64,000 bases of DNA, taken from contig NC_047066.1 of NCBI RefSeq assembly GCF_902459465.1, positions 11,098,001 through 11,162,000 on the forward strand, read 5' to 3'. This DNA is from Asterias rubens (taxonomy: Eukaryota). Position 1 is the stretch's first letter; each line of letters begins with the position of its first letter. This document shows, in pieces, positions 20,600 to 64,000 of the stretch. A program made the translations under genes and the position numbers. The notes beneath the pieces are model-generated. The model saw only the letters and a list, made by a program, of their open reading frames with translations, had not been told where the DNA came from and ran no database searches.

Positions 20600-20726
20600 C
20601 TGTATAAATCAAAGAATACAAAAGAGGGAATACAAGTGAATAAATTCTGTTTCATTTCAAATTCAGTTTTGCTAAAACTCAACATTACATGACCTCGGTG
20701 CCGCCTTATTCTAGGATCTAAACCTT

Positions 20727-20795
20727 TTGTTTGTTTGTTTGTTTGTTTGTTTGTTGATGCATTTGTTTGTTTGTTTGTTTGTTTGTTTGTTGTTT
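20727..20795. repeat. (GTTT)n microsatellite
   Basis: Direct inspection. Confidence 0.95.
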
Positions 20796-22366
20796 TTTTT
20801 GATAAGACAATCTCCACAGAGTTTTTTAAAATACAACAAGTGGACAAAAAACAAAAATAAAAACAATAATAATAACCAGCTTTTATGTTGTGCTTTTCAC
20901 ACCCGAAGGGCGTCTCAAAGCACTTCCAACATTATTACCCCTGGTCACTGGGTCTTAATTCATTTCTGAAACCATCTCAGCTCCCTATGGAGTATACAGC
21001 TTGTACGACAAATATGCACTACTCGGCTAAACTCACATCTCTGCCCTTACATGTACACATTTACCCCCTGGGTGTAGAGAAGCTGCAATTAAGTGTCTTG
21101 CTCAGGGACACAAGTGTCATGGCCGGGACTTGAACCCATAATTTGCTGAACAGAAGCACCAGACACACTTCGATAAATACAAGTAGCATAAAAGACATAG
21201 AAAATCTGAGGAAATGTACAGGGAAACACAAATCTTCTGTGCAATCACCTGAAATACAAAACTACAGGTTTGAATACTGTGCGGATTATTGCTGTCTCGT
21301 TTTGGTGATTGCTCTAGTTTTTCCCACACAAAATTAAGGCTCAATAGCAGATCATGTGTAAACAGGGGGAAAACTTTAGTTTCCCAGGCACAGATACATG
21401 TAGGCAGACAGCGTGAACTCTCGTCACATGAGCAAGGCATCCAGGGGCAGAAAAATAAATGTTGTTGTGAAATCCAAGGAACAAAGTTGTTCAGTGCAAG
21501 TTTTGTTTTAGTTGCATGGTGTGTTTCACGAACACTTTCAAAACCTATTATGTAACCAAAGGGTAACTACAATCTTGTTGTCCCCTACAGATAAACAAAA
21601 ATTGTCCCCTGATAAACAATTTCCAAACCAAACCGAACAAAAATTACAAAGAAAGCAAAATGGGTCATTTCGTGTCAATTCAACGCGTTTTTGGACAGGA
21701 CCGTCACAAATTTAAATACAATTTGGTGAGCTGATTTGACTCATTGAAAAATTTCATTTCAAACCATGTTGACCATTTCCAAAAAGCGTGTCCAACTGAC
21801 CTGAAATGACCCAAATAAAATAAAAAAATCGAGGAGAACTTAATTGACATTAAATATTCACAGCCATCTCCCTGGCCTTGCAATGAATCTTCATTACAGC
21901 AGACTATCTGACAGTAATTGCAAAAACAAATTTTCGTTAGATAACAATGCTCTAGACACACATGCTAGAGTTGACATTTTTTAAAGAAGGCAAGCAAGTC
22001 CAACCTTATTCAATAGCAGGCATGAAACATTGTTAAAACAAGTTGACACTACTATTGAAAGGAAAGCGAGTCATTGCAATTAATAAACTATAAGTCAACA
22101 AAATTTAAAAGCACAAGAAGTAAAAAGAAATTGACAAACTTAATGAATGATGGACTTCAAACAATTTCTTGACAGTTTATCTGCACACTTGAAAAGGTCA
22201 ATTTAAGACTTTTTAAAGACTCCTTTGATGCCGCCTTAAACAGCGTTTAACATATTTAAGATTTGGTTTGTTTTTGCACACTTCATACATTTTTTTAAGA
22301 ACTCAAATAACTGAATTTAGTATACGTCAAATTTATTCTCTGGGCTTTAAACTTTGACAGTTTAAT

Positions 22367-22854
22367 TTAAAGGGTGGCTGCAGTTTTTTAATTTTTATTT
22401 AAACGATTAAACATGACTTTTTAAACCTGAAATATGTTTTTATTTTTTTTATTTAATGCGCAAGTATTTGTAAAGTGGTTTTCAAGAGATTAGGGGAACC
22501 CAACCGCCCCTAAAAGGGAGCCTTCATGTGACGTCATGTCGGGAACCCGAGCCGTCGGGCCCCCTGGCTGTGTGCATATAGAGACGTGTGCATTGTGTGG
22601 CCTGGTGCCTAGGCGCCTGTAGTTAGGAACCAGACTCTTTTTGCCGACGATATGTTTGAATTCCCGACGTGACGTCGATGGTAGGGGGCGGCAACAATCC
22701 ACAAAAGGGGGGGCATGACTTATTCGCTAATTACGCAAGTGAGATATGTCGGGGAAAAACAAAACACATTTTTATTGATGTTCAATACATATATCAGAAA
22801 TAAATGACAGCAAAATTAACTGTTTTATTTTAATTCGCTGCAGCACCCCTTTAA
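22367..22854. mobile_element. Kolobok-type MITE family D (GC-richer core)
   Basis: ttaaagggtggctgcag...ctgcagcacccctttaa. Confidence 0.72.
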
Positions 22855-22933
22855 GACTTTTTAATACTTTTTCAGTATCCACAGAAACTGGAGAAAAGTG
22901 TCAAATTTGTTTTGCCCTTAACCAGTTACTTAC

Positions 22934-22943
22934 TGATTGACAG
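22934..22943 (+). promoter_or_regulatory. TGATTGACAG (Pbx-Meis/Prep-type decamer) in a conserved block upstream of GPCR1; homologous (T/A)ATTGACAG at 26255, 29303 and 32608
   Basis: Motif kept at the same position in an alignable upstream block of copies 1-4; function is inferred. Confidence 0.35.
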
Positions 22944-23649
22944 AGCACAACCTTAACTAGATTATAATTATAGGCAATGCATCAACACTTGATTGTGATC
23001 AAACAAAACCCCATTGCTGTTAGTGGTTCAATGCAGTCTTAATTTTAGATAAAGCACACTGTGGGCTAATCTTCTGAAGTAGAGCAGATACAACTGCTGG
23101 CTGTACCAGACTCTTCTCGTTATAAATCTTGTACATGGAGGTACGGTTGTACAAGTCAAGACGGTACACTTCTTTGTGGTTAGTCTGAGACGAAGTTAAC
23201 ACATGCCTCTCTATTCAACTCAATTTTCTGTACATCAAAAAGCAGACATGCAGAAGATCAGAGAAGGTATATGGAAACCGAATAATGGTGAATGAAGATT
23301 TTCAATGATTTGAAGATTTTTACAAAGAGAACCATGGTGTAAAGATATCATGAGTGTTTGGATTTTTGAAGACGATAACAAATTTGTGTCAGACATCTGA
23401 AGAACAGCATACAACAACATAAAGCATCTTGCTTTTTAAACTGGACTAAAACAGAAGCAAAACAGTCTTTCAACTTATCCACAAATTGGAAAGGTAGTTA
23501 CTGCTGATGTAATTTTTCTATGTTTGTATTCTTGAAGCCAAATCCCTGCAAGACATCTTCAATGCACCTTGAAAATATATACTTCTTCTAAGCTGAATGT
23601 TCAGTGACGACTAGATTTTACCAATAAACTTTGCGAGGATAAAGACAAC

Positions 23650-24816
23650 ATGGGTTCAAACGTGGCATTAAGTGACTGCAGTGCTTCTTATAACATCACT
23701 GAGGAGACAGTTTCTGAGTGGCTTTTTACTCCAGCAGACACCATCATTATTACCGTCATCACACCTATCATCATGGCTCTTGGTCTCATCAACAACTCTA
23801 CTTTTCTATTTGTAATTTTCCGTTCTCCAAAACTGAGATCTGAAACTAATATTTACTTGGCACATTTGGCAATGGCTGATCTTCTGTACCTGATTTTGAG
23901 TGTTTTCCACGATCTCATTATGTACAAAACAGGGCCCACAATAAGAGGAAGTGTTATCTGGGGCACATTTCTTATGAGCTCAGCAGAATGCATCTGCTTT
24001 ATAATAGTGACAAATACTGGTTATTTTGCATCAATTGTATTTCTTACCATGGTATCATTTGAGAGATACCTTGCCATGTGCCACCCCTTCAAACATCTGA
24101 AAATACGTGGACAGCGTCGAACAAACAAAACAGTGGCAATCTGCTGGCTGGTGGGGTTGATTTTTTCAGGAATAACCGTTCCTGGCGCAGCTAAACATGC
24201 TATTAAATGTCTTCAATGGCCCGATGATGAAATGTACCATGGGTTTCCATCCACTGTGGCGTCTTGTGGTGCCGTACAGCCATGGGTTATCTACTACACT
24301 ACACCATTGTTAAATATTCCTTGGCTAATTGCACTGGTTGCCAACATTTACATGTTTGTAAAAATCATACAGACATTACACAAGCGCAAGAGTGCCTTAG
24401 GTAAGACACAAAGATACAACGAAGCAGTGAATACTCGAAACCAAGTAGCCAAGATGCTGATTGTCAACGGAGTAGTATTCTTCATCTGCCAGACACCATA
24501 CCGCGTGATAAGTCTGACTGAATGGGTTAGTCTTTTAGCAAAGATTCAGGATCCTTTACATGCAAGTCTTGGGCTTGCAAAAGTATGGGTTTCTTTAATT
24601 CCTCAGTATGTCAACACCATTGTCAACCCTTTGATCTACGGTGTGATGAGTTCTCAATACCGTTCAGCTTTAATAGTTGCCTTTCAGTGCAAGAGAAGAT
24701 CCAGAAAAAAGGAATTTTCTGCGACCATTTCTTCAAATGTTATCAATGCACCTGAGACCGATATGCGATCGTCCAACACAATTAAAGACAATGAAAAGGT
24801 GGAAAGCAGACTGTGA
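23650..24816 (+). CDS. Intronless class A (rhodopsin-like) GPCR, copy 1, 388 aa
   Basis: 7 hydrophobic segments; N1.50, LAMADL, ERY, TM4 W, FFICQTP, NPLIY motifs; N-terminal NITE sequon. Confidence 0.96.
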   Translation: MGSNVALSDCSASYNITEETVSEWLFTPADTIIITVITPIIMALGLINNSTFLFVIFRSPKLRSETNIYLAHLAMADLLYLILSVFHDLIMYKTGPTIRGSVIWGTFLMSSAECICFIIVTNTGYFASIVFLTMVSFERYLAMCHPFKHLKIRGQRRTNKTVAICWLVGLIFSGITVPGAAKHAIKCLQWPDDEMYHGFPSTVASCGAVQPWVIYYTTPLLNIPWLIALVANIYMFVKIIQTLHKRKSALGKTQRYNEAVNTRNQVAKMLIVNGVVFFICQTPYRVISLTEWVSLLAKIQDPLHASLGLAKVWVSLIPQYVNTIVNPLIYGVMSSQYRSALIVAFQCKRRSRKKEFSATISSNVINAPETDMRSSNTIKDNEKVESRL

Positions 24817-26759
24817 TTGAAAACAACTGAATTTTTGTAAATTGAACTGAGGTAAGCCAATTAATTGTCTTGCATCATGATCAACAAGACATTGTTCAGA
24901 GAGGTGTAGAATGGTTGGTAACTTTGGAAAGTCTCTAACAAATCAATAAGGAAGAAGCAAGAAATGTACTCTAAAGACTTTTGTAAAACTTCATTTTTTG
25001 AAACATTTTGTAAAGATTACTTAAAACTGTGCCCTGTTAAACACATTATAAAATGCAAAAAACTGTGCAAATATAGATACCAAATAATAAAATAAAAAAA
25101 TTCACCACAGGGATTAGGGTGTTAAAATAACACAAATACTTTCACAACAAATACATTGGTGTTATTTTCACACCCTTAATGTTAATTTTGATTTTCTCTT
25201 TGGTATCTATATGTGACAACACATAGTTTTTGCAGTGCAAATCCATGATTAAGTTGTACTCTGTCTACTTTGTCATTCAATTCAATTCCATCAAATATTT
25301 CCACAATATTACAGAACTACATTATGCCTAAATACTGGGTTTTATTCCATACTTAATTAATATTCAAACATTTTTAAAAGGGCGAAATCCAATGCCACTT
25401 CAATTGAATATCAAAGTTAGGAAAGAACCAACAAATATTTGAGAATGGGGGAAAAACACTTGAAATGGGACCTAAATATTTCTTACAGATTTATTACAAA
25501 AATTGCACTAACTTGCAGATTTGGAGGGTTACTTTAAAATCTTACTGAAGTTTAATGGCCAGTAGATGGTAACCGTTTGATCACAATTCCACAGCAAACA
25601 GGCTTCCAAGCCTAACCAGCTGTGTAACTGATGCTTTCTTCTAAAATGTGGAATCAGAGATACTCCACAAGCGAGAAGTTAGATTAATTAGGTTCAGGAA
25701 AAATGACAGCTTTATTTTGGAAGATTTGAGGTGATACGAATATTAGATATGAAGTAGTTTAGTACTTTACCAACAGATGGAAAAGGTGATAGAAGTATGC
25801 TTCTTTCATGTATAACAGTCATCAGACCTTTTCTTCTAAAATGTGGAATCAGAAAGACTGCACAAGTGAGAAGTTGGAATGATGAGGTTCAGAAGAAAAA
25901 AAAACCCAGCTTGGGTAACTTAATGACTTTAATCAAAACCTAAAAGTGGCTTAACTCTACATATAGTGACAAGGGTCTGATGAGAGTTGAATGAAGCATG
26001 GCTCTATCACTGTTGGTAAATTACTACACTATTTCAATCACCGACTCACCCCAAAACTTCCAAAATCAATTGCTTACAGACTTCTACACGAACCCATGAA
26101 CTCTTAGCATCCGGTGTCGGGTCAACCAGAGTATTTTTTTACAAGGGTCGAAACGTTTTAGTGTTGATTTTGATGAAAAGAGTCCTTGAGTATTTATTAC
26201 TTGTGAGAACTGTTCATGAGCTTTAATTTTGTTTAACATTAGCCAATCAATTACTAATTGACAGAGCACAATCCAAGCGAGATCATTATTAGATACTGCA
26301 TCACTTTGACCATTATAAAACAACAAAAGAGAACCTCATTGCTGCACTTAGTGCGTCAATACATTATTTATATAAGAAATCAATCAAGGCGAAGTTGAAC
26401 TCAGATAGAGCAGGCAACTACTAGCTGTACAATGCTCCTTTCTCCATAAACCTTGTGCGGGAAGGTATAGTTGGACGCGTACAGACTACGACTGCGATTC
26501 TTGATATCAAACAGTTATCAATGTTCAATCAATACAAACACAGAGCGTTTGCTTTTTTAACTAGACTAAGACAAACGTAAAACAGTCTTACACAAATGGG
26601 ATATGAAGTTGTTGCTGATGTTATTTGTCTCGTTTTGCATTCTTCAAACCGAACCCCTGCAAGACATCTTAATGCAACTAAAAAGAAAAACTTCAATCCA
26701 AGTAAAGTGACTAGTGTCGACCTCAATTCACCAATAAACTCTGCATGGATAAAGCCAAC

Positions 26760-27905
26760 ATGGGTTCGAACGTGGCATCAAGTGACTGCAGTGCTTTTAC
26801 AAACATCACTGAGGAGACAGTTTCTGAGTGGCTTTTTACTCCAGCAGACTCCATCATTATTACCGGCATCATACCGATTATCATGGCTCTTGGTCTCATC
26901 AACAACTTTACTTTTCTATTTGTGGTTTTCCGTTCTCCAAAAATGAGATCTGAAACTATTATGTACTTGACACATTTGGCAGTCGCTGATCTTCTGTACC
27001 TGTTTATGGGTGCCGGATCGAAGCTCGGAAAGTACAAAACAGCGCCAGTTATTGGAGGCACTTTTCTTAAGAACTCAGCAGAATGCATCTGCTTTTTTTT
27101 AGTTATTAATACTTGCTATTTTGCATCGATTGCTTTTGTTACCATGGTTTCGTTCGAGAGATACATTGCCCTGTGCCATCCCATCAAACATCTGAAAATA
27201 CGTGGACGGCGTCGAACAAACAAAACAGTGGCGATCTGCTGGCTGGTTGGGTTAATGTTTTCAGGAATAACATTACCTGGCGCAGCTAAACATGCTACTA
27301 AATGTCTCCAATGGCCCGATGATGACAAGTACCATGGGTTTCCATCCACTGTGGCGTCTTGTGGTGCCGTACAGCCATGGGTTATCTACTTCACTAAACC
27401 ATTGTTAAATATTCCTTGGCTAATTGCGCTGGTTGCCAACATTTACATGTTTGTTAAAATCATACAGACATTACACAAGCGCAGGAGTGCCTTAGGTAAG
27501 ACACAAAGATACAACGAAGCAGTGCATACTCGAAACCAAGTAGCCAAGATGCTGATTGTCAACGGAGTAGTATTCTTCATCTGCCAGACACCATACCGCG
27601 TGATAAGTCTGACCTCATGGGTTAGTCTTTTAGCAAAGATTCAGGATCCTTTACACGCAAGTCTTGGGCTTGCAAAAGTATGGGTTTCTTTAATTCCTCA
27701 GTATGTCAACACCATTGTCAACCCTTTGATCTACGGTGTGATGAGTTCTCAATACCGTTCAGCTTTAATTGTTGCCTTTCAGTGCAAGAGAAGATCCAGA
27801 AATAAGGAAGTTTCTGCAACCATTTCTTCAAATGTTTTCAACGCACTCCAGATGCAATCGTTCGACACATTTAACGACAGTATGAAGATGGAAAGCAGAG
27901 TGTGA
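26760..27905 (+). CDS. Intronless class A GPCR, copy 2 (381 aa from the paralog-conserved ATG; in-frame upstream ATG at 26745)
   Basis: Same motifs; close paralog of copies 1, 3 and 4. Confidence 0.96.
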   Translation: MGSNVASSDCSAFTNITEETVSEWLFTPADSIIITGIIPIIMALGLINNFTFLFVVFRSPKMRSETIMYLTHLAVADLLYLFMGAGSKLGKYKTAPVIGGTFLKNSAECICFFLVINTCYFASIAFVTMVSFERYIALCHPIKHLKIRGRRRTNKTVAICWLVGLMFSGITLPGAAKHATKCLQWPDDDKYHGFPSTVASCGAVQPWVIYFTKPLLNIPWLIALVANIYMFVKIIQTLHKRRSALGKTQRYNEAVHTRNQVAKMLIVNGVVFFICQTPYRVISLTSWVSLLAKIQDPLHASLGLAKVWVSLIPQYVNTIVNPLIYGVMSSQYRSALIVAFQCKRRSRNKEVSATISSNVFNALQMQSFDTFNDSMKMESRV

Positions 27906-28865
27906 ATAAAATTGATGAATTTTTCAAAATTCAAATGTAAGCATCATGATCAACAGGAAGTTGTTCATATTCAGAGGTGTGGAATGATGGGTAAGTTTGG
28001 AAAGTCTCTAACAATTCAATAAGGAAGAAGCAAGGAACGTCCTCTAAAGACCTTTATCTGATGAAACATTTTGTGAAATTTATTTAAAACTGTGCACTGT
28101 GTTACACATTATTGTACATGTGTACAATGCAAAATCTGTCTCACATAGATACCAAATAAGGATCGAAACTTTACACAATAGGATGTTAATACATGTACAG
28201 TATAACACTTATACTGCGAAAGCAATTTACAAGGGGCTTAACATTAGATTTTAATTGCGCCTCTTTCTTGAATCTAGACGGACAGCACCTACATTATGGC
28301 GTTAATTTTACATGGTCACTAATCTACAGTGTATGTCCATATTTAGTTTACTTAGTGTACTTTGTCGTTTTGCATGTACTGGGTGTTTTTCAACACATGA
28401 TTCATATATGTACAAGTATCAACATTTAGTGCAATCATAATTGAATATCAACAAAAGTCAGGCAGGAACTTAACATTTTCTGTATAAGGGGAAAAACATA
28501 CTTAAAATGTGACGTCAAAAAAAAAATCTTTTTTTTATAAAAAGTGCACTTCAAGACTTGGAGGGGAACTTTTTAGCTTTTGTTGAACAGCTGGTGGATG
28601 GGAAAAGTTTGTTCACTTCTGTGTCTTGCATGTCAATGAGTGTTGCTGCTGTGTTTCTTTCAAAGTGGAGTCAAAGAGATTACACATCTCAGAAGCTAGA
28701 AAGATTAAAGTTGAAGCAAAAAAAACAGATAAGCGCCTGGTGGCTTAACTTTACATAAAGTGGCAAGGGAATGATGACTGTAATTTCTTGAAAGAAGCAT
28801 GGTTCAATCACCTTTTATTCCTTATACAATTTTTTTCATGAGCTTTACTTTTCAAAGCTATGTTT

Positions 28866-29230
28866 TTAAAAGCACTCGACATTACACCCGACATTGGTAA
28901 TTACTCAAAATAATTGTTAGCTTAGCAAATTTACTTGGTAGTGGGCAATGGAGAGCTGTTGATAGTATAAAACTTTGTGAGAAACGGCTCCCTCTGAAAT
29001 AACGTAGTTTTTGAGAAAGAAGTAATTTCTCACTAAAACATTTGAATTGAATTTGACGTGTCAAATTCAAGCATTTGAAAGCACACAACTTGTGCGACAA
29101 GGGTGTTTATTCGCTCGAAACTTGACGACCAATTGAGCTCAAAGTTCCACAGATTTGTTTTGTTATGCATATGAGATACACCAAGTGAAAAGACAAGTAT
29201 TTGAGCAATTACCAAAGGTCGAGTGCCTTA
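28866..29230. mobile_element. Kolobok-type MITE family A, inserted before the 3.3 kb duplication
   Basis: Near-identical twin at 32175-32540 in the same flanking context. Confidence 0.8.
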
Positions 29231-30040
29231 GGTATTAAAAAAAAATGTTTTTAAATCTACAAATCTTTGTTTGTTTGACATTTACAAGTCACTTACATGT
29301 ACTTATTGACAGAATACAATCTAAACAAGATCATTATTAAGCAATGCATCAACATTTGACAGTGATAAAGCAACAAAAGAGTAGACTACCTCATTGCTGT
29401 ACTTAGTGAGTCAATAAAGTCTTTATTTAGATAAAGCACATGAGGCAAGAATGTACTTTGAAGTAGACAACTACTATGTACAAGACTCGTTTCCTCCATA
29501 CTCTTGAACAGGAAGGCACACACAGTTGGACACGTCCAGTCTACATTTCTTAATATCATTACTTGATTGTGATATCTCGTTACTCCGAGATGAAGTCTGC
29601 GCAAACAACTGCCTCCCTATATTCAATAGACATTCTTCACCTTAATAGCAGATGTGCAGAAGATCCTTGAACGTATAAAAACCAAATCGTGACGGCACAG
29701 AGATTTTTAATGATTTGATGAATTCTTCAAAGAGAACCACAGTGGCAAAATAATGGGATTGTTGATATAATCCATGTGGGCATATTTAAAAAGTCTTCTC
29801 CGATAGGGCCTATTCAAAGGACAGAAATACAACAGCACAAAGGTATGGCTTTTGAAACTTTACTATAACAATATAAGCAAAAACAGTCTATCAGCAAGTT
29901 GGAGTCTGATGTTAATTGTCTTCAAGCGAAATCCGCAAGACATCTTTATTGCAACTTGGAAAAAAGACTTCCTTGTAAGTATAAGTGACCACCAGTGACG
30001 TGTAGGATTTCATCGTTAAACTTTTAGAGGATATAACAGC

Positions 30041-31189
30041 ATGGGTTCAAATATGACTTCAAGTGATGACTGCAGTGCTTTTACAAACATCACTGAGGAC
30101 AAAGTTGCTCGGTGGCTTTTTACTCCAGCAGACACCATCATTATTACCGTCATCATACCGATCATCATGGCTCTTGGGTTCATCAACAACTCTACTTTTC
30201 TATTTGTAATTTTACGTTCTCCAAAAATGAGATCTGAAACTATTAGGTACTTGACACATTTGGCAGTCGCTGATCTTCTGTACCTGTTTATGGGTGCCGG
30301 ATCCAAGCTCGGAAAGTACAAAACAGCGCCAGTTATTGGAGGCACTTTTCTTAAGAACTCAGCAGAATGCATCTGCTTTTTTTTAGTTATTAATACTTGC
30401 TATTTTGCATCGATTGCTTTTGTTACCATGGTTTCGTTCGAGAGATACATTGCCCTGTGCCATCCCATCAAACATCTGAAAATACGTGGACGGCGTCGAA
30501 CGAACAAAACAGTGGCGATCTGCTGGCTGGTTGGGTTAATTTTTTCAGGATTAACATTACCTGGCTCAGCTAAACATGTTATTAAATGTCTTCAATGGCC
30601 CGATGATGACAAGTACCATGGGTTCCCATCCACTGTGGCGTCTTGTGGTGCCATACAACCATGGGTTATCTACTTCACTAAACCATTGTTAAATATTCCT
30701 TGGCTAATTGCGCTGGTTGCCAACATTTACATGTTTGTTAAAATCATACAGACATTACACAAGCGCAGGAGTGCCTTAGGTAAGACACAAAGATACAACG
30801 AAGCAGTGCATACTCGAAACCAAGTAGCCAAGATGCTGATTGTCAATGGAGTAGTATTCTTCATCTGCCAGACACCATACCGCGTGATAAGTCTGACTGA
30901 ATGGGTTAGTCTTTTAGCAAAGATTCAGGATCCTTTACACGCAAGTCTTGGGCTTGCAAAGTTATGGGTTTCTTTAATTCCTCAGTATGTCAACACCATT
31001 GTCAACCCTTTGATCTACGGTGTGATGAGTTCACAATACCGTTCAGCTTTAATAGTTGCCTTTCAGTGCAAGAGAAGATCCAGAAATAAGGAAGTTTCTG
31101 CAACCATTTCTTCAAATGTTTTCAACGCACTCCAGATGCAATCGTTCGACACATTTAACGACAGTATGAAGATGGAAAGCAGAGTGTGA
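30041..31189 (+). CDS. Intronless class A GPCR, copy 3, 382 aa (chimera of copy-4-like 5' end and copy-2-like body)
   Basis: Same motifs; direct comparison with copies 2 and 4. Confidence 0.96.
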   Translation: MGSNMTSSDDCSAFTNITEDKVARWLFTPADTIIITVIIPIIMALGFINNSTFLFVILRSPKMRSETIRYLTHLAVADLLYLFMGAGSKLGKYKTAPVIGGTFLKNSAECICFFLVINTCYFASIAFVTMVSFERYIALCHPIKHLKIRGRRRTNKTVAICWLVGLIFSGLTLPGSAKHVIKCLQWPDDDKYHGFPSTVASCGAIQPWVIYFTKPLLNIPWLIALVANIYMFVKIIQTLHKRRSALGKTQRYNEAVHTRNQVAKMLIVNGVVFFICQTPYRVISLTEWVSLLAKIQDPLHASLGLAKLWVSLIPQYVNTIVNPLIYGVMSSQYRSALIVAFQCKRRSRNKEVSATISSNVFNALQMQSFDTFNDSMKMESRV

Positions 31190-32174
31190 ATAAAATTGAT
31201 GAATTTTTGAAAACTCAAATGTAAGCATCATGATCAACAGGAAGTTGTTCATATTCAGAGGTGTGGAATGATGGGTAAGTTTGGAAAGTCTCTAACAATT
31301 CAATAAGGAAGAAGCAAGGAATGTCCTCTAAAGACCTTTATCTGATGAAACATTTTGTGAAATTTATTTAAAACTGTGCACTGTGTTACACATTATTGTA
31401 CATGTGTACAATGCAAAATCTGTCTCACATAGATACCAAATAAGGATCGAAACTTTACACAATAGGATGTTAATACATGTACAGTATAACACTTATACTA
31501 CAAAAGCAATTTACAAAGGGCTAAACACCATTATATTTAAATTTCGCCTCTTTCTTGAATCTAGACGGACAGCACCTACATTATGGCGTTAATTTTACAT
31601 GGTCACTAATCTACAGTGTATGTCCATATTTAGTTTACTTAGTGTACATGTACTTTGTCGTTTTGCATGTACTGGGTGTTATTCAACACATGATTCATAT
31701 ATGTACAAGTATCAACATTTAGTGCAATCATAATTGAATATCAACAAAAGTCAGGCAGGAACTTAACATTTTCTGTATAAGGGGAAAAACAAACTTAAAA
31801 TGTGACGTCAAATAAAAATTTCTTTTTTTTATAAAAGGTGCACTTCAAGATTTGGAGGGGAACTTTTTAGCTTTTGTTGAACAGCTGGTGGATGGGAAAA
31901 GTTTGTTCACTTCTCGGCAGCAAACTGTGTCTTGCATGTCAAGGAGTGTTGCTGCTGTGTTTCTTTCAAAGTGGAGTCAAAGAGATTACACATCTCAGAA
32001 GCTAGAAAGATTAAAGTTGAAGCAAAAAAACAGATAAGCGCCTGGTGTAAGCGCTTAATTTTACATAAAGTGGCAAGGGAATGATGACTGTAATTTCTTG
32101 AAAGAAGCATGGTTCAATCCCCTTTTATTCCTTATACAAATTTTTTCACGAGCTTTAGTTTTCAAAGCTATGTT

Positions 32175-32540
32175 TTTAAAGGCACTTGACATTACACTCG
32201 ACATTGGTAATTACTCAAAATAATTGTTAGCATAGCAAATTTACCTGGTAATGGGCAATGGAGAGCTGTTGATAGTATAACACTTTGTGAGAAACGGCTC
32301 CCTCTGAAATAACGTAGTTTTTGAGAATGAAGTAATTTCTCACTAAAATATTTGAACTGAATTTGAGGTGTCAAATTCAAGCATCTGAAAGCACACAACT
32401 TGTGCGACAAGGGTGTTTATTCTCTCAAAACTTGACGACCAATTGAGCTCAAAGTTTCACAGATTTGTTATGTTATGCTTATGAGACACACCAAGTGAAA
32501 AGACAAGTATTTGAGCAATTACCAAAGGTCGAGTGCCTTA
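32175..32540. mobile_element. Kolobok-type MITE family A, duplicated twin
   Basis: See 28866-29230. Confidence 0.8.
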
Positions 32541-33344
32541 GGTATTAAAAAAAAAATGTTTTTAAATCTCTAAATCTTTGTTTGTTTGACATTTACAAGT
32601 CACTTACTTATTGACAGAATACAATCTAAACAAGATCATTATTAAGCAATGCATCAACATTTGACAGTGATAAAGCAATAAATAGTAGACTACCTCATTG
32701 CTGTACTTAGTGAGTCAATAAAGTCTTTATTTAGATAAAGCACATGAGGCGAGAATGTACTTTGAAGCAGACAACTACTGTGTACAAGACTCGTTTTCTC
32801 ATTACTCTTGAACAAGAAGGCACACAGTTGGACACGTTCAGTCTACGTTTCTTAATATCATTACTTGATTGTGATATCTCGTTACCCCGAGATGAAGTCG
32901 GCGCAAACAACTGCCTCCCTGTATTCAATAGACATTCTTCACCTTAATAGCAGATGTGCAGAAGATCCTTGAACGTATGACAACCAAATTGTGACGGCAC
33001 AGAGATTTTAAATGATTTGATGAATTCTTCAAAGAGAACCACAGTGGCAAAAATAATGGGATTGTTGATATAATCTATGTGGGCATATTTAAAAAGTCTT
33101 CTCCGATAGGGCCTATTCAAAGGACAGAAATACAACAGCACAAAGGTATGGCTTTTGAAACTTTACTATAACAATATAAGCAAAAACAGTCTATCAGCAA
33201 GTTGGAAATCTGATGTTAATTGTCTTCAAGCCAAATCTGCAAGACATCTTTATTGCAACTTGGAAAAAAGACTTCCTTGTAAGTATAAGTGACCACCAGT
33301 GACGTGTAGGATTTCATCGTTAAACTTTTAGAGGATATAACAGC

Positions 33345-34499
33345 ATGGGTTCAAATATGACTTCAACTGATGACTGCAGTGCTTTTACAAACATCACTGA
33401 GGACAAAGTTTCCCGGTGGCTTTTTACTCCAGCAGACACCATCATTATTACCGTCATCATACCAATCATCATGGGTCTTGGTCTCATCAACAACTTTACT
33501 TTTCTATTTGTAATTTTACGTTCTCCAAAAATGAGATCTGAAACTATTATTTACTTGGCACATTTGGCAGTCGCTGATCTTCTCTACCTGATCTTGGGTG
33601 CTACATCTAAGCTTGGAAAGTACAAAACAGCACCAGTTATTGGAGGCACTTTTCAAAGAAGCTCAGCAGAATGCATCTGCCTTCAGACAGTAATAAATAC
33701 TGGTTATTTTGCATCAATTGCTTTTGTTACCATGGTATCATTTGAGAGATACCTTGCCATGTGCCATCCCATCAAACATTTGAAAATACGTGGACAGCGT
33801 CGAACAAACAAAACAGTGGCGATCTGCTGGCTGGTGGGGTTAATTTTTTCAGGAATAACAGTGCCTGGCGCAGCTAAACATGCTACTAAATGTCTTCAAT
33901 GGCCCGATGATGACAAGTACCATGGTTTCCCATCCACTGTGGCGTCTTGTGGTGCTATACAGCCATGGGTAATCTACATCACTAAACCATTGTTAAATGT
34001 TCCTTGGCTAATTGCGCTGGTTGCCAACATTTACATGTTTGTAAAAATCATACAGACATTACACAAGCGCAAGAGTGCCTTAGGTAAGACACAAAGATAC
34101 AACGAAGCAGTGAATACTCAGAACCAAGTAGCCAAGATGCTGATTGTCAATGGAGTAGTATTCTTCATCTGCCAGACACCATACCGCGTGATAAGTCTGA
34201 CTGAATGGGTTAGTCTCTTAGCACAGATTCCAGATCCTATATACGCAAGACTGGGGCTTGCAAAGTTATGGGTTTCTTTAATTCCTCAGTCTGTCAACAC
34301 CATTGTCAACCCTTTGATCTACGGTGGGATGAGTTCTCAGTATCGCTCAGCTTTAATAATCACGTTTTGCAGCAAAAGAAGATCCAAAAATAAGGAAGTT
34401 TCTGCAACCATTCATCTCCATGTTTTAACTGCACCTGAGACTGATGTGCGATTCACCAACACATTCAAAGACGATAAGAATGTGGAAAGCAGACTGTGA
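33345..34499 (+). CDS. Intronless class A GPCR, copy 4, 384 aa
   Basis: Same motifs. Confidence 0.96.
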   Translation: MGSNMTSTDDCSAFTNITEDKVSRWLFTPADTIIITVIIPIIMGLGLINNFTFLFVILRSPKMRSETIIYLAHLAVADLLYLILGATSKLGKYKTAPVIGGTFQRSSAECICLQTVINTGYFASIAFVTMVSFERYLAMCHPIKHLKIRGQRRTNKTVAICWLVGLIFSGITVPGAAKHATKCLQWPDDDKYHGFPSTVASCGAIQPWVIYITKPLLNVPWLIALVANIYMFVKIIQTLHKRKSALGKTQRYNEAVNTQNQVAKMLIVNGVVFFICQTPYRVISLTEWVSLLAQIPDPIYARLGLAKLWVSLIPQSVNTIVNPLIYGGMSSQYRSALIITFCSKRRSKNKEVSATIHLHVLTAPETDVRFTNTFKDDKNVESRL

Positions 34500-38883: not shown

Positions 38884-40059
38884 TTAAAGCCGAGTTATGT
38901 TGGATTTCACAAGCATGGTGTCATTAGTTTCATCATCGGTAAAGTTTCGGGCTCTCTTCATCGCTTGAAGACTGACTGCAGGATTGGCTTTGTCAAATTG
39001 AAGCCGACTAGATCCAGTATTGCATCGAAATGCTTGAATGAATGCAGAACGGTATTGAGCATGAATTGCACCGTATATCAGTGGATTGACTATGGTATTT
39101 ATTAACAGAGGAATTTCGGCAAACCATGCTTTGTTGACTGCCAGTTGTGAGTATGTTTCATTAGAACCGTATGTTGGTATGATCATGTGATAATAATTCA
39201 CCAAATGGTCCACAATGGAAGGTGTCTGGCAGGTGAAGAATACCACACCATTGACGATCAGAAGTTGTGCGACTTTGTTTCGGCTTTGCTTTGCTTGATG
39301 GTCGTTTCCTTTCATAAAGGTAGCACTCCTGCGTTTGTTTAATGCATAAATAATCCGTATATACATAAAAACATTAGCAATCATTGTAGTGAACCAGGCT
39401 ACAAGTGACAGGGGTGGTCCAAAAATGCCTGCAACGTCAACTACAGGCCCACAGTAGCTGAACAATGTTGGAAAGTTCCGGTAAACTTCAGGCCAGATGA
39501 AACAACGTGTTTTCATTACAGCCGAAGTGCTTAATGTCAGTGAGCAAGCAAACATCAACCCCACCACCCAGCAGATAGCGACCATTGTGTTGGTTCGGCG
39601 CCGTCCACGGATTTTCAGATGTTTCCCTGGATGGCATACAGCAAGATATCTCTCCAATGACACCGTTGTAAGCAGAGCAATGGATACAAAGTATCCCGTT
39701 AACCTCAACGACCCGAAGGTGAAACACTTAGCAGAACTGCTCAGGATGACATTGTTTGCCACAGATGGGGATGTTGCATAAGTCAAAATAATAAACACGA
39801 TGCTCGTAACAGTCAGGTACAGAAGATCAGCCACGGCCAAATGTGCTAAGCAGATATTGGTTGCAGATCTCATCGTGGGAACACGAAACATGACAAACAG
39901 AAAAGCTGAGTTGTTGATCACTCCAAGACACAAGATGATTGGTATGACGATGGTAATAACGATGATGTCCTTGGGTGAATAAAGCCACAACGATATATTC
40001 AACAAAGAGATGTTTTTAGCATCAGCTAGACACTCATCTAGTGAGCTATTATCTGCCAT
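38884..40059 (-). CDS. Intronless class A GPCR, copy 5, 391 aa (second subclade)
   Basis: LAVADL, ERY, FFTCQTP, NPLIY; 7 TM. Confidence 0.95.
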   Translation of the reverse strand: MADNSSLDECLADAKNISLLNISLWLYSPKDIIVITIVIPIILCLGVINNSAFLFVMFRVPTMRSATNICLAHLAVADLLYLTVTSIVFIILTYATSPSVANNVILSSSAKCFTFGSLRLTGYFVSIALLTTVSLERYLAVCHPGKHLKIRGRRRTNTMVAICWVVGLMFACSLTLSTSAVMKTRCFIWPEVYRNFPTLFSYCGPVVDVAGIFGPPLSLVAWFTTMIANVFMYIRIIYALNKRRSATFMKGNDHQAKQSRNKVAQLLIVNGVVFFTCQTPSIVDHLVNYYHMIIPTYGSNETYSQLAVNKAWFAEIPLLINTIVNPLIYGAIHAQYRSAFIQAFRCNTGSSRLQFDKANPAVSLQAMKRARNFTDDETNDTMLVKSNITRL

Positions 40060-46845: not shown

Positions 46846-47996
46846 TCAAAGGCTGGTGACGTCACACTCCGTCTCATTTAAGTTTCGTGCTCTCTTCATC
46901 ACATGGGCACTGACTGCGGGAATGTTTTTGTCGAATTGAAGCTGACTAGATCCAGTATTGCATCGAAACGCTTGAATGAATGCAGATCGATATTGTGCAT
47001 GAATAGTGCCATATATCAGTGGATTGACTATGGTGTTTATTAACAGAGGAATTTCAGAAAACCAAGGTCCATTCCTTAACAAAGTTTCCAATCCTTCACT
47101 AGCATTACCCGGTGTCGAGTAAAAAACATAGCTAGTTATAACGATCACAACAGATGGAGTTTGACAGATGAAGAATACAACTCCATTGGCGATCAGAACT
47201 TGAGCAACCTTGTTAAGACTTTTCTGCGCCTTGTTGTTGGTTCTTTTCATAAAGTAGCACTCTTGCGCTTGTTCAATGCATAAATGATCTTCACATACAT
47301 AAACACATTAGCAAACATTGCAATGAACCAGGGTACAACTCCCAGAGGCAATGTGATACGCCATATCATTGAATGTAGTCCTTGACAGCCCGATACCTCC
47401 CTTGGATAATCTTGGTAACCCTCAGGCCACTGGACAAACAGCTTGTAATTCACTGCTGAGATGCCTAATGTTGTTGAGCATGCAAACATCAACCCCACCA
47501 CCCAACAGATAGCGACCATTGTGTTGGTTCGACGCCGTCCACGGACTTTCAGATGCTGGATAGGATGGCATACAGCAAGATATCTCTCCAATGACACCGT
47601 GGTCACCAGAGCAATGGATACAAAGTATCCCATGCGCTTCAACAACTCAAAAATAAAACATGCAGCATCACTTTTCGCGATAGCAATGAATGCCACAGAT
47701 GGGGATGCAGTGTAACTCAAAATGTTGAACACGAGGCTCGTAACAGACAGGTACAGAAGATCAGCCACGGCCAAATGTGCTAAGCAGATATTGGTTGCAG
47801 ATCTCATTTTGGGAACACGAAAAATGACAAATAAAAAAGCTGAATTGTTGATCACTCCGAGGCACAAGAGAATCGGTACAAGGATGGTAATTAAGATGGT
47901 GTCTACCTGTGAATACTCCCAATTAATAACATCCTCCTCATATATATATATTTGCTCGTGTTCTGAAGTGCTCTCATCCAGCAAGATACTCGCCAT
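46846..47996 (-). pseudogene. Class A GPCR copy 6 with a single 1-nt deletion in ICL3 at ~47251-47254 (recent pseudogene or assembly indel); ~383 aa if repaired
   Basis: ORFs 47247..48056 (TM1-5) and 46846..47250 (TM6-7) abut; copy 5 reads GCT ACC TTT ATG where copy 6 is one base short; start set at the acacaATGGC context shared with copy 5. Confidence 0.88.
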
Positions 47997-48680
47997 TGTG
48001 TTCATTTTGACAGGTTTTTTTTCTGGATGCTCCTTATGAGTGGTCAACCACAACATCCATACTCAGACTAATTAGAACTCACTATACGCCAAAGCGAAGT
48101 TAACAACGAGAAGTTCCCTCGATCCACCAGGGCGAAGTACTATAGTTCAAGCCAATTTCCCACGTTCCATCCACAGTGGCTAAATAGTAGGGCACAGTAC
48201 TCTCCCGAGCTCCAAAGTCTACTCACACCGACAGAAGAATATATCAAGAAAAGTTCTCAAGTTTTCAAAGAACAAATTTTACTCAGCAAAGTAGATACAC
48301 GTCCACATTGTATCACTGCAACCTGAATAAATATTGTTACCTCTTGCAACATACGTACAACGCCTCAAAGCCCACTGGCTCCATCTGGTGTATATGTGCA
48401 TACAATGGCTAACACTGTCTACTTGGCACTCAGGTAGTGGTAGAAGTCACTCATGCAATTAAGGTTTGATTCTTGTTAGAGATTTAACCTTCATTTTACA
48501 CACGTCTAGATATAATTTCATCGATCACATGTATTGGATTGGCTTTCGAAACCACTGTGACCTTTAAATGCAGTGTTTGTATAAAAATGAACATACAAGT
48601 ACTGTAGTAGTGAGTCAGCACAATAGTCCTCCACTGAACCGAGAAGTTTAGAAACTCCCGAAAAGTTGAACACACTTTGC

Positions 48681-50890: not shown

Positions 50891-50894
50891 AAAC

Positions 50895-56246: not shown

Positions 56247-56934
56247 CAGGAAGCTGGGTGACACTTTGTTTGCCTTTGAAACAGAATGAAAAAACAATCA
56301 GTGTAAAAAATTAAGTGTTGTTTCTGGGTAAACACCTTTGGAATAAAACAATTTAATTTTGGTTACTTCTTTTAGAAGAGGGAGGGCTGGACAAACAATC
56401 AGTGCAAACATTAAAGTGTGACATCCATTACTTCGTCCATTCTGTCTTCAGAAATACCACCGTTAGTAAGTAACTCAAGAGTCTCAGGACTCTCAGTGAC
56501 ACGAACAGACAGCCTTTTTGGTCACAGTTCTGGACTTTACCCGCCCCTTCTAATGGCTTTCGATGAATGATTGTATTTACAGAGCTCTACTTCGGTGGTG
56601 CGGCTAAATTTCTATTTGTGTGCACCTGTATCCTGCTTATAAATAGAGGAATATATAACCACAGTGTTCAGGATCTTATCTTATCTGCACGAACTAGTTT
56701 GACCTAAAATTAGAGCAGCAATTTGAAAGCGATAAATGTGCTCCATTTCTTTTCTATTTATGCTGATAATTGACATCAAAGGTCATGGAGTATATATGTA
56801 CGTAACACAAATCTAAATCAACAACAAGTGATGTTTTACAAGCAAGCTACATGTATCAGTCACTTGAAAGGTATGAGAGCTTCATTTTGTTAAAGCAGCT
56901 GTTCAATACACAGGTTTTGAAATTCTCAACTAGC

Positions 56935-58041
56935 ATGGGAGTAGCTATGGCATCGACTGAGTGCGATAAGACTTTTAACATCACCGAAGAGGAAGTTTGG
57001 GAGTGGCTTTACACCTCAGCAGAGGAGGTCCTTATTACTGCCGTGATACCAATTATCTCTTGTATTGGCTTTATCTGCAATTCACTGTTTCTACTCGTTA
57101 TCTGCTGCAATCATACCATGAGCTCGGCAACTAATATTTACTTAGCTCACCTGGCCCTTGCCGATCTGTCTTTCCTCTGTTTGTCTGCCCTGCATCATAT
57201 CTTGAGGTACAGCGCTTCACCATTGTCATATGATCATTTCTTCAAGAACTCGGCTGAGTGCGTTATGTTTTTCATAATTATCAACACTGCATACTTCGGA
57301 TCCATTGCTTTGGTTACCATGGTGACAGTTGAAAGATACCTTTCGCTCTGCCACCCTGTGAGACATCTTGCAATCCGCAGTCGACAGCGAACCAATAGAA
57401 TAGTTGCAACATGCTGGCTGGTGGGGTTTGTGCTTTCGGTGCTGACCGTACCACGAATTGCTGTACATAACATTCGTTGCCTACATTGGCCTTCTGATAA
57501 GGAAACTTACCAAAAACTCCCGTTAACATATTCTACTTGTCGTGCTGTCAAGCCATGGGTAGCTTACTACACAGGACCATTGCTTAACTTTCCTTGGTTG
57601 CTAGCGATGATTGCTAGTAGCTACATGTACGTCCGAATCATACAGTTGCTGCACAAGCGCAGAAATACCAATAGCACAATGCAGGCTGCTCGGACAACTA
57701 TGCGGAACCAAGTTGCGAAAATGCTGATCGTGAACGGTGTGGTATTTTTCTTTTGCCAGATACCATACAGCATTCTAAGTCTGACTGGATGGATTTGCTT
57801 GATAGCCCAGGTTCCCAATCCGTTATACGCTGCTTCAATTGAGAAACAATTAGAATGGATTGCTATTGTCGCTCAGTTGATCAACAACAGTGTCAATCCA
57901 GTGATCTATGGAGTGATGAGCCCACATTACCGATCTGCATTCTTAAAACTGTTTAAATTTCAATTCAAAAACCAATGCAGACGGCGCCAAGTTCCAAAAA
58001 GCCTGACAACAGACCACAGTACCCAAGAAACAAGATTGTGA
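56935..58041 (+). CDS. Intronless class A GPCR, copy 7 (~364-368 aa; start at 56935 or 56947; ORF-track start 56851 is probably too long)
   Basis: LALADL, ERY, FFFCQIP, NPVIY; N-terminal C...NITEE shared with paralogs. Confidence 0.95.
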   Translation: MGVAMASTECDKTFNITEEEVWEWLYTSAEEVLITAVIPIISCIGFICNSLFLLVICCNHTMSSATNIYLAHLALADLSFLCLSALHHILRYSASPLSYDHFFKNSAECVMFFIIINTAYFGSIALVTMVTVERYLSLCHPVRHLAIRSRQRTNRIVATCWLVGFVLSVLTVPRIAVHNIRCLHWPSDKETYQKLPLTYSTCRAVKPWVAYYTGPLLNFPWLLAMIASSYMYVRIIQLLHKRRNTNSTMQAARTTMRNQVAKMLIVNGVVFFFCQIPYSILSLTGWICLIAQVPNPLYAASIEKQLEWIAIVAQLINNSVNPVIYGVMSPHYRSAFLKLFKFQFKNQCRRRQVPKSLTTDHSTQETRL

Positions 58042-60736: not shown

Positions 60737-61078
60737 AGGTTAAAACAATACATTTAATGCAGTCGAGTATTTGGTTTCGTCTCTTTGATAATCACTCCTA
60801 ACTTTAATGGCATACACACGTATGTAACCCTTTTGGTTTAAACAGCCTACAGCAGCTTTCGATATGTACAAAGCATTTTGAGAAGTAGTGCGGTTATGTG
60901 TTTTAGGCCCAAAAAATTTAACCTGAGAAATGTTTTTATACTGCCACAAACGTTTGTCAGGTTGTGTATTCCAATTACACTATTCTTCCTGCGTGGACAT
61001 AACCGCTCCGGATTTTCAGCAATATCTAAACGAGTTAATGCAATCACCTATTGAAATGATTTGTTCATAGGTTGATTT

Positions 61079-61614
61079 ATTAGCAGTTTCGTAGCGAAGC
61101 GCAGCGAAACAGCTCTTGTTTTTGTTGAAGTTTTTTTTAGCTGTTTCGTAGCAAAGCGCAGCGAAACAGCTCTTGTTTTTGTTAAATTTTTTTTGTTTAT
61201 TTTTATTTTTTATTTGTCATCTTCATATGTGTGAAGTTTCAAATCAATGACATCATTGGGGGTCACGTGACGCAGCCTTAAAGGTGTACTTTTTGAACTA
61301 ATATAACTCCCGAAGTAATCATGCGATCATGTTGAAACTTGGTAGGTTGTTGGATATTGGCAAGTTCTTGTGAAATGTGAAATGACGTCATGATGACGTC
61401 ATCACATGATTTTTTATGATTTTTTCCATTTTTGCACCTCTAAGTCATAAAATGCTATCTGAACATGGTATAATCCAAATTATTTATTTAAATAGGCTGG
61501 ATTGGTCATAACTATTTTGATTCAAAGAGAATTTCAAATTAAGTGCAAACAATAATTTGAAAATTTTATTTACGAAACAGCTCTGCATTTGTGCACAAAT
61601 GCAATTATGTCTAG
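61079..61614 (+). mobile_element. HINE-like element with tandemly duplicated 5' terminus
   Basis: 12-bp subTIR agctgtttcgta (61139)/tacgaaacagct (61571); palindrome tgcatttgtgcacaaatgca, then atgtCTAG. Confidence 0.65.
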
Positions 61615-61737
61615 CTGTATTTGCATAGCATAATTAAAACAACCGATTGTTTCCAAATCCACAGTTTACCTTTAATGTATTGCAGTTTTTAGAATTCAGT
61701 GCATACGTGCACTGCTCTCATCATGTTTTGAATGAAT

Positions 61738-62126
61738 CAAAGGCAGTGGACACTATTGGTAATTACTCCAAATAATTATCATTAGCATAAAACCTCACTT
61801 GGTAGCGAGTAATGGGGAGAGGTTGATGGTATAAAACATTGTGAGAAACGGTTCCCTTTGAAGTGACGTAGTTTTCAAGAAAGAAGTAATTTTCCACGAA
61901 TTTGATTTGGAGGCCTCAAGTTTAGAATTTGAGGTCTCGAAATCAAGCATCTGAAAGCATACAACTACGTGTGACAAGGGTATTTTTTCTTTGATAGTTA
62001 TCTCTTCAACTCCGACGATCAATCGAGCTAAAATTTTCACAGGTTTGTTATTTTATGCATATTTTGAGATACACCAAGTGAGAAGACTGGTCTTTGACAA
62101 TTACCAATAGTGTCCAGTGTCTTTAA
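61738..62126. mobile_element. Kolobok-type MITE family A (further fragment at ~62940-63110)
   Basis: TIRs; left target site is tcaa. Confidence 0.83.
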
Positions 62127-63652
62127 ATATTGCATGCAAAGGCTTGTTTAAAAATTATTGTACTGCAGTGGTGAGCAAAAAGTATCAGCTGCATTATTCA
62201 CTGCCAAAAAGAAACCCATTAATGTAACATGAGGTCTGATCAGTATTCTACACTTTGTGGATGTATTCTATGTCTATTATTAAAAACCTGAATGAATATA
62301 TTAATAACACCATAATGTATCATTTACTACAATCAGCAAGAAAGGTGTTTCTTCATAGAGCAACATTATTGCAGGTTTGTTGCAGTCCAGTTATACATTT
62401 GGTGATACATGTAATTGAAGTGGTCTATACAAAACAAAACTCAATGTATTGCTAGTAAAAAAGAAATGCATTATAGAGCGCCACCAAGAGTTTAATTGGG
62501 GCCATTTTCAAAGTCTATTCTAGAAGACTAGCAAATAATGCACACGTTATAAGCTTTGAGCTTTTCAAAGCATTCCATAAAGCCGTGCATATAACAACAT
62601 ATAATTATCACTGTTAACAGACACAAGTTTACAACAAAAAACTTAATAATAAAATCAGTTTAATCGTTCAAACGCTTACAAAGTCCCAGAAACCTCGTTC
62701 CAGGGGTGATCCATGCCGCGTCCTTTAAGCAAGTTTGCGCTGCTTGCTTTGCCCACAGTATTTGTTACTAAAAATGTTCCAGTACATGTATTAATATTTC
62801 AAACAGGCCTGTGTGGTTGAACCACTCAAACCACTCAACGTGCGCGCTTTAAGTGCAATAGCCTGCAATAGAGGCACAAAGAGCAGCCTATAGTCTCCTC
62901 TCGTTTTTCTTTTATAACGTGACATGTCAAACTGTATGCAGTTTTTTTAGAAAGAAGTAATTTCCAACTTAAATATTTGAATTTGAATATGAGACAAACT
63001 TTCTACTCATTTGATTTTGAGACCTCAGATTTAGAATTTGAGATCCCCAAAACAAGCATCCAAAAGCACACATCTTCGTGTGACAAGCATGTTTTTTATT
63101 CCATTATTACTTCCCTACCAGGGGTAAGTGATGAGAGGTATTGATACGGCGTGACACCCTGGTTAGTGAGGCTGTTATTACCCATCTCGCCAATTTAACT
63201 GATGCTGCTAGCGTGGACTTCAAACATGTCTGAGAAGGAACACTGTTTCCATGTTACTATTAATGGCATTTAATTGGCCACAAGGCTCAAATATTAACTG
63301 CGACTGTGCAAAGTTATGTGGTTGTCCCAGGAGATTTGTAAAAATAACCGTTGTGAAGATTGAAACTGTTAAAAACAAAAAAATCAAAGCACTGATGAAA
63401 TACCGCTCCAATAAATTGTGTTTATTTTTATGGTTAATTATTTGCAAGTGGTTAGCAAAGAATTGATTGATGTTTTTATTTCACATATCATGGGATACAC
63501 AGTCAGACGGAAGAGGCAGGAGCAGGACTTGTGGTTCATAAAAGCTTCATCGAGTAGCTATTACACCACAACTGCGAGTTAAACACAAGCGAGACGTGTT
63601 GAGATACGATCAACTGTAACTCCTGTTTGCAGAAGATTAAAAGCGAATCGTC

Positions 63653-64000
63653 ATGGGGAATGATGTGACATCAGATAGCTGTAGTTTGTCCTATAACATC
63701 ACTGAGGAGACCACATCCGATTGGATTCATACACCGGTGGATACCATCATAACCACTATCATCATACCGATTATAGTAACCATAGGAATCTTCAACAACA
63801 CTACTTTTGTTTTTGTCATATTCCGCATTCCTAGAATGAGATCGGAAACTAATATCTATTTGGTACACTTGGCACTGGCTGATCTTCTGTTCTTGTGCCT
63901 ATCTGCGTTACAGTACTTCTGGCTCTATGCAACATCGCCAGTGTTCGATAGTGTCATCTTTGTGACCTCGGCAGAGTGTGTCAGCTTTTTTGTAGCCATA
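63653..64000 (+). CDS. Class A GPCR copy 8, 5' partial (116 codons; N-terminus to start of TM3), runs off the right edge
   Basis: Hand translated: MGNDVTSDSCSLSYNITEETTSDWIHTPVDTIITTIIIPII...FNNTTFVFVIFRIPRMRSETNIYLVHLALADLLFL...SAECVSFFVAI; missing from the ORF track because there is no stop in the window. Confidence 0.95.
   Translation, partial: MGNDVTSDSCSLSYNITEETTSDWIHTPVDTIITTIIIPIIVTIGIFNNTTFVFVIFRIPRMRSETNIYLVHLALADLLFLCLSALQYFWLYATSPVFDSVIFVTSAECVSFFVAI

Follow-up and report, generated by a model that had tools for sequence, protein, structure and literature searches.

A tandem array of class-A orphan GPCRs in coding intron 5 of a DEPDC5-like gene of the starfish Asterias rubens

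Introduction

How does a cluster of receptor genes come to lie between two coding exons of a DEPDC5-like gene, and is the host still a single gene around it? The question is raised by a window of 64,000 nucleotides from Asterias rubens (C5:11098001-11162000), in which DEPDC5-like exons are followed to the right by genes for G protein-coupled receptors (GPCRs). A preliminary description of this window had proposed that at least 43 kb and at least eight receptor genes, six antisense to the host and two co-oriented with it, sit in one host intron. The eight loci proved to be real, and the totals have grown to an intron of 62,074 bp and 10 receptor loci. The locus is very probably a tandem array of intronless class-A orphan GPCRs that lies wholly in coding intron 5 of the A. 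rubens DEPDC5-like gene and belongs to a starfish-restricted expansion. In what follows, positions past either edge of the window are given as window-equivalent coordinates, and whole-genome searches covered the 417.6-Mb assembly.

The host gene and its coding intron 5

The exons of the host were mapped by colinear tblastn with the orthologs of Patiria miniata (P0084) and Asterias amurensis (P0359) as queries, and the Pfam IML1 profile (PF12257) was searched against the six-frame translation of the whole A. rubens genome. The host features are the following.

20468-20599, minus strand: coding exon 6 of the DEPDC5-like host, read in the sequence, matching Pfam IML1 positions 88-135 and covered by spliced contigs of runs X1, X3 and X5 with 0 mismatches.
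291-18730, minus strand: 17 further host coding exons, found by tblastn with P0084 and P0359, with introns of 0.5-1.8 kb.
20600-64000, minus strand: in-window portion of coding intron 5; the whole intron covers 20600-82673 and has no DEPDC5 match.
Window-equivalent 82674-82872, minus strand: host exon 5 (EMWDFDTCG), 18.7 kb beyond the right edge, with its donor at L002:1515.
Window-equivalent 86928-87104, minus strand: host exon 4 (DMWR), found by the IML1 profile and tblastn.

Exon 6 had been described as opening at a phase-1 acceptor in mid-protein, and both the sequence and the match to the IML1 profile agree with this. The exon is preceded by tttatacag, its first two bases finish a codon, which sets the acceptor in phase 1, and its donor reads gtaagg. 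The 17 introns to its left are as small in the exon map as had been reported, and the 3' exons of the host extend beyond the left edge of the window to a final exon at about -4977. Upstream of exon 6, tblastn with the two orthologs found no DEPDC5 exon between 20.6 and 82.6 kb, the 20.6-23.6 kb next to the exon included. The missing 5' exons had been expected beyond the right edge, and there they were found, on the same contig and strand: IML1 positions 23-94 match C5:11180660-11180872 and positions 1-31 match C5:11184904-11184996, both on the strand of exon 6, and the host ATG lies at window-equivalent 90857. Coding intron 5 thus measures 62,074 bp, and the remaining host introns 0.45-4.1 kb.

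The two exons that border this intron fit each other. Exon 5 ends in GAG ATG TGG GAC TTT GAC ACG TGC G, followed by gtaagt, which encodes EMWDFDTC and supplies the first base of the following Gly codon, so that the donor is in phase 1. Since the acceptor of exon 6 is also in phase 1, their splice phases are compatible. The predicted junction consists of GACACGTGCG from exon 5 joined to GAGATCTG from exon 6, and the two exons together read EMWDFDTCGDLYIEK, a junction that is identical in the orthologs of A. amurensis, Acanthaster, Patiria and Strongylocentrotus. The host map is colinear with the orthologs across residues 1-1435, and the identity to the A. amurensis ortholog, taken exon by exon, is 88-100%. 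In particular, the five 5' exons, which encode the first 182 residues, are intact, and their protein is 100% identical to that of A. amurensis. All in all, the host is a single colinear gene of about 96 kb.

The receptor array

Receptors were searched by tblastn with three open reading frame (ORF) queries over 114 kb, namely the window with 10 kb added on its left and 40 kb on its right. Coding intron 5 was found to contain 10 GPCR loci (9 intact and 1 frameshifted), of which eight are antisense to the host and two, copies 5 and 6, are sense.

23650-24816, plus strand, antisense: GPCR1, intact, 388 amino acids; Pfam 7tm_1 match with E=3e-34; A. amurensis ortholog with 91% identity and a ratio of nonsynonymous to synonymous divergence (dN/dS) of 0.4.
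26745-27905, plus strand, antisense: GPCR2, intact ORF found by tblastn, 386 amino acids.
30041-31189, plus strand, antisense: GPCR3, intact, 382 amino acids; recombinant.
33345-34499, plus strand, antisense: GPCR4, intact, 384 amino acids.
38884-40059, minus strand, sense: GPCR5, intact, 391 amino acids; its A. amurensis ortholog (90% identity) is the sole sense copy there.
46849-48008, minus strand, sense: GPCR6, with one frameshift in the third intracellular loop, near 47245-47250.
56851-58041, plus strand, antisense: GPCR7, intact; the ORF opens at 56851 and the likely start is 56935, as in the 368-amino-acid database protein P0029.
Window-equivalent 63653-64786, plus strand, antisense: GPCR8, intact, 377 amino acids; it crosses the right edge, with its 5' part (63653-64000) in the window.
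Window-equivalent 73524-74603, plus strand: antisense copy beyond the right edge, an ORF found by tblastn.
Window-equivalent 80543-81694, plus strand, antisense: GPCR10, ending about 1 kb from exon 5 and convergent with the host.

The intact ORFs encode 359-396 amino acids, and the ten uninterrupted or once-broken ORFs together span 59 kb. No family member was found outside the intron in the 10 kb to the left of the window or in the 21 kb past the far end of the intron. The four copies that were tested against the Pfam profile PF00001 (7tm_1) score 91-119 bits, to be compared with a cut-off of 30.5, and align to profile positions 2-260 of 260; the ERY (SFERYLAMCHP) and NPLIYG motifs are readable in every intact copy. 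Database hits above 40% identity come from starfish only, and those of brittle star and crinoid reach at most 33%. Automatic names conflict even among near-identical copies (kappa-opioid-like, neuromedin-U-receptor-like, capa-receptor-like, somatostatin receptor-like), and the copies are therefore treated as orphan class-A receptors. About 25 close family members are present in the A. rubens genome, and the intron nest is their largest cluster.

Orthologs of the two Asterias species have a dN/dS of 0.29-0.45 at a synonymous divergence (dS) of about 0.09-0.10. The intronic copies of the valvatids (Acanthaster and Patiria) give 0.28-0.50, and the overall range is 0.28-0.54. On these ratios the receptor copies appear constrained, if loosely, in a pattern typical of lineage-specific receptor expansions such as the ApORs and the surreal-GPCRs. 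Presumably, the receptors use their own promoters and serve chemosensation or bind other lineage-specific ligands.

Between GPCR5 and GPCR6, the segment 42001-44000 has a GC skew of -0.27 and an AT skew of +0.20 and is probably a simple or tandem repeat.

One host gene or two

Whether exon 6 is joined to an upstream exon was followed in the contigs of four sequencing runs mapped onto 17200-23199. The runs are presumed to be RNA, and their contigs are spliced. A junction check at 20599 had been suggested in the preliminary description, and spliced contigs of two runs do use this acceptor: a 4031-nucleotide contig of X1 and a 350-nucleotide contig of X3 join 17258-17363, about 18656-18730 and 20468-20600 with 0 mismatches, and each extends 37 nucleotides past 20600 with letters that are not those of the intron. 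Exon 6 is thus not a transcript start. The length of the continuation points to its origin. Exon 5 differs from that of the other A. rubens DEPDC5 paralog in its last 8 nucleotides, and the preceding 56 nucleotides are identical in both; a contig built with k=31 must break in such a shared tract, 38 nucleotides from the end of exon 5. As one of these 38 is a G that also matches 20600, 37 nucleotides are predicted, equal to the number observed. From this length, the sequence beyond the acceptor is inferred to be exon 5.

Several points weigh against reading the locus as an array nested in one host gene since early starfish. The use of the exon 5 donor is deduced from the length of the contigs and not from their letters, and the runs with spliced contigs are only guessed to be RNA. 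In two RNA-type runs, of unknown tissue, just 0.06-0.10 of the words of the GPCR1 ORF are found. The maximum-likelihood tree groups the valvatid intronic copies (100/99) as sister to all other starfish members and not with the Asterias nest. Finally, RefSeq models the A. rubens host as two genes.

In the RefSeq annotation, the 5' model has an isoform X2 (XP_033628434.1, 194 amino acids) that reads from ...DTCG through the exon 5 donor and adds 12 intron-encoded residues, and the 3' model (XP_033628143.1, 1225 amino acids) begins at an internal Met of exon 6 (MRNINSEL, within WKMRNINS). These separate products would be expected if the host were functionally split in A. rubens into a short 5' gene and a separate 3' gene starting near exon 6, with the array intergenic. 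Such a split is very unlikely. Indeed, the contigs of two runs cross the 20599 acceptor into 37 non-intron nucleotides, the very length predicted for exon 5, and the phases of the two exons fit. The five 5' exons have stayed intact and identical in protein to those of A. amurensis, where the gene is modelled whole, and a product without the first 204 residues would lack most of the conserved N-terminal domain. The annotation of A. amurensis, made on an independent assembly, has one gene of 1435 amino acids and 86.8 kb that joins both parts around nine nested GPCRs. The two RefSeq models of the A. rubens host probably result from a mistake in annotation, due to the 62-kb intron, and users of RefSeq would mistake the A. 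rubens DEPDC5-like protein for a truncated product.

The same independent assembly bears on the possibility that a misjoin placed the 5' exons 62 kb away. Exons and receptors follow one another there in the same order and orientation as in A. rubens, and the 114 kb examined in A. rubens contain 0 assembly gaps (no N), so that the chance of such an artefact is practically negligible.

The host among DEPDC5 paralogs

The preliminary description had taken the host for the mTORC1-repressing, amino-acid-sensing DEPDC5 gene. The gene is DEPDC5-like by its domains: the A. amurensis ortholog contains IML1_N, vWA_IML1, a weak DEP and DEPDC5_CTD and has retained both the DMWR and the EMWDFD motif, as in DEPDC5/Iml1, a subunit of GATOR1. 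The host is nevertheless not the slow-evolving copy, and the role assigned to it is an extrapolation. In a tree of 24 sequences, the echinoderm DEPDC5 proteins form two clades, each of which contains crinoids, brittle stars, starfish and sea urchins, and the two are jointly sister to the hemichordates, which places the duplication on the echinoderm stem. The host ortholog belongs to clade L (support of 100 in the Shimodaira-Hasegawa-like approximate likelihood ratio test), which is longer-branched and echinoderm-only and whose proteins have about 1370-1435 amino acids. It falls outside the slower-evolving clade C, the copy closest to the single DEPDC5 of other animals. The clade-C copy of A. 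rubens lies at C5:1.28-1.32 Mb, 9.8 Mb away, with RefSeq proteins of 1589 and 1626 amino acids, and its equivalent intron is 2.2 kb long and empty. A part of clade L in GATOR1 is putative, and the existence of two echinoderm paralogs matters for mTORC1/GATOR1 work in echinoderms.

The copy at 1.3 Mb matched the Patiria query poorly and was at one point considered a degenerate duplicate, which was ruled out once the two clades were resolved. At the DNA level, the two paralogs share 93% identity in exon 4 (86% if only third codon positions are counted), and exon 5 contains the 56-nucleotide identical tract. The introns on either side are not alike, and the pattern resembles patchy gene conversion between the DEPDC5 paralogs in Asterias.

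The nest in other starfish and its age

Synteny in other asteroids had been proposed as a check, and the same intron was found to hold antisense GPCRs of the family in A. amurensis, Acanthaster and Patiria.

Asterias rubens: intron 5 of the clade-L gene, 62 kb; 9 intact and 1 frameshifted GPCR, 8 antisense and 2 sense.
Asterias amurensis: intron 5, about 57 kb; 9 annotated GPCRs in the same order, 8 antisense and 1 sense.
Acanthaster planci: intron 5, about 29 kb with assembly gaps; 2 intact and 2 broken copies, all antisense, unannotated.
Patiria miniata: intron 5, 12.4 kb; 1 intact and 1 near-identical frameshifted copy, both antisense, unannotated.
Strongylocentrotus purpuratus (ortholog): intron 5, about 0.5 kb; no GPCR.

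The starfish crown group is roughly 200 million years old. A single early entry into the intron, followed by lineage-specific growth, is a fairly likely history when set against independent entries. When the Patiria intronic GPCR was searched against the whole A. rubens genome, its seven best matches were all nest copies. In approximately unbiased (AU) tests, neither the Asterias nest as one clade (p=0.52) nor the nest together with the valvatid intronic copies as one clade (p=0.42) was rejected.

The nesting might instead not be ancestral, with separate entries of the family into this intron in the Asterias lineage and in that of the valvatids, or with moves in and out. The separate clade of valvatid intronic copies mentioned above, sister to the other starfish members with 96/80, would fit such a history, as would the identities to GPCR1, which are 49% for non-nested Patiria copies and 38% for the intronic ones, and a relative of GPCR5 that lies on another chromosome in A. 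amurensis. The basal placement of the valvatid copies, however, unites long branches and was flagged as unreliable by the tool, and the AU test does not reject one clade. Intron, family and antisense orientation are the same in three genera, and the reciprocal search ranks the nest copies first. Independent entry is thus considered rather improbable, and a single early entry is preferred.

Three candidates for further nested copies were rejected. The Acanthaster GPCR P0008 and the large Patiria cluster are both outside the host gene, and Acanthaster P0025 lies 9.6 kb downstream of the host 3' end. The intact intronic GPCR ORFs at L022:37968-43484 in Patiria and L027:21774-45886 in Acanthaster are absent from the called genes and look like missed genes.

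Growth of the array

GPCR3, which sits between GPCR2 and GPCR4, is a composite of its neighbours. Its 5' flank and first 155 or so nucleotides are 94-99% identical to GPCR4, and the remainder together with 1.4 kb of 3' flank is 95-100% identical to GPCR2. The recombinant tract with its flanks covers 28541-33735, and the breakpoint lies near nucleotide +155 of the GPCR3 ORF. Judged from these identities, GPCR3 corresponds to the product expected from an unequal crossover between misaligned GPCR4 and GPCR2. The dS between GPCR3 and GPCR2 is 0.065, less than the 0.09-0.10 between the Asterias species, and in A. amurensis only one gene occupies the corresponding position. The recombinant is specific to A. 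rubens. A. amurensis in turn has a GPCR1 duplicate of its own (dS 0.055), and no counterpart of GPCR6 was found in that species.

The history of the array can be sketched from these data. One GPCR of the family would have landed in a short host intron of an early starfish (the sea urchin intron measures 0.5 kb) and would have been retained there mostly antisense, since splicing and polyadenylation of the host are least likely to suffer in this orientation. Copies would then have multiplied through unequal crossing-over, as suggested by the GPCR3 recombinant and by the extra duplicates in each Asterias species, and the growing array would have swollen the intron to its present lengths of 12 kb (Patiria), 29 kb (Acanthaster) and 57-62 kb (Asterias). 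If so, an intron would have been enlarged more than 100-fold (from 0.5 to 62 kb) purely via birth-and-death of a resident gene family, with the GPCR3 crossover showing how.

By-product or function

The host had been called unusual for a chemoreceptor-like array, and this part of the preliminary description has to be toned down. Nested genes are common in animals, mostly antisense (71-73% in Drosophila) and typically young duplicates that landed in long introns (Assis 2016, PMC5174743). The present locus shares with described nested genes (PMC5174743; Kaer et al. 2011, PMC3192792) short intronless genes in a long intron of a many-exon host, a mostly opposite orientation (8/10 here), several genes per host and an origin from young duplicates; of its two sense copies, one (GPCR6) is the broken one. 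It differs in that a ten-member paralogous array fills one intron and takes up about 65% of the host span, and in that the occupation is common to starfish orders while copy number changes. The literature search found no paper describing the GPCR array locus of intron 5. The array is a large and evolutionarily persistent case of a known arrangement, visible in the public annotation of A. amurensis and mis-modelled in A. rubens.

Among receptors, the closest likeness is to the surreal-GPCRs of sea urchins and the ApORs of Acanthaster (Roberts et al. 2017, PMC5442662), which are also class-A, single-exon and tandem, in both orientations, each confined to one echinoderm class and inconsistently named by automatic annotation. 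Nesting in a host gene is not reported there, and the nest copies are likened to these receptors by class and layout, not by group membership. By this analogy, the nest receptors may have a chemosensory role.

Most likely, the nesting was tolerated and is largely neutral, a by-product of the site at which the array expanded. A functional arrangement would imply that host transcription gates the receptors, or that receptor transcription causes intron retention or early termination in the host, and that receptor expression is thereby tied to a nutrient-sensing paralog. Starfish of different orders have retained the arrangement, and two hints would suit a function, namely the RefSeq isoform that reads through the exon 5 donor and the convergent end of GPCR10 about 1 kb from exon 5. 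Costs of this kind are documented elsewhere, among them retained introns and polyadenylation at cryptic or intronic sites (PMC3192792, PMC13309782), and transcriptional interference gates odorant-receptor choice in ant arrays (PMC12393541). The case closest to the isoform is H13/Mcts2 (PMC13309782), which likewise has a nested unit in a host intron and a truncated host isoform ending there; the 194-amino-acid isoform differs in that it ends at the donor, with the nearest receptor about 1 kb away, and its dependence on receptor transcription is putative. Copies 5 and 6, at which the preliminary description had raised interference and premature polyadenylation, lie far from this donor. A functional role is nonetheless unlikely. 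Copy number and intron length vary five-fold among species, and young duplicates are known to land and multiply neutrally in long introns (PMC5174743).

A stronger version, that the array has been kept in the intron since early starfish because it is used, would have host transcription through eight antisense receptors, or the reverse, gate the receptors or yield the 194-amino-acid isoform. This is a long shot; if true, it would link a nutrient-signalling paralog to chemoreception, in the manner of the ant arrays. The series of copy numbers (Patiria 2, Acanthaster 4, A. amurensis 9 and A. rubens 10) could be used to ask whether nested antisense arrays burden their host.

Other observations

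A BEN-domain gene is nested antisense after host coding exon 2 in Patiria (L022:8369-16485) and Acanthaster (L027:5248-10392). The A. rubens host intron at this place is only about 1.2 kb long, so that the BEN gene is not there. Finally, RNA-type contigs align in their tens of thousands, with 90-99% identity, to intronic repeats at 18200-19800 of the window. The depth reaches the 10^5 range, and the repeats look like a very abundant transcribed family of short repeats resembling miniature inverted-repeat transposable elements.

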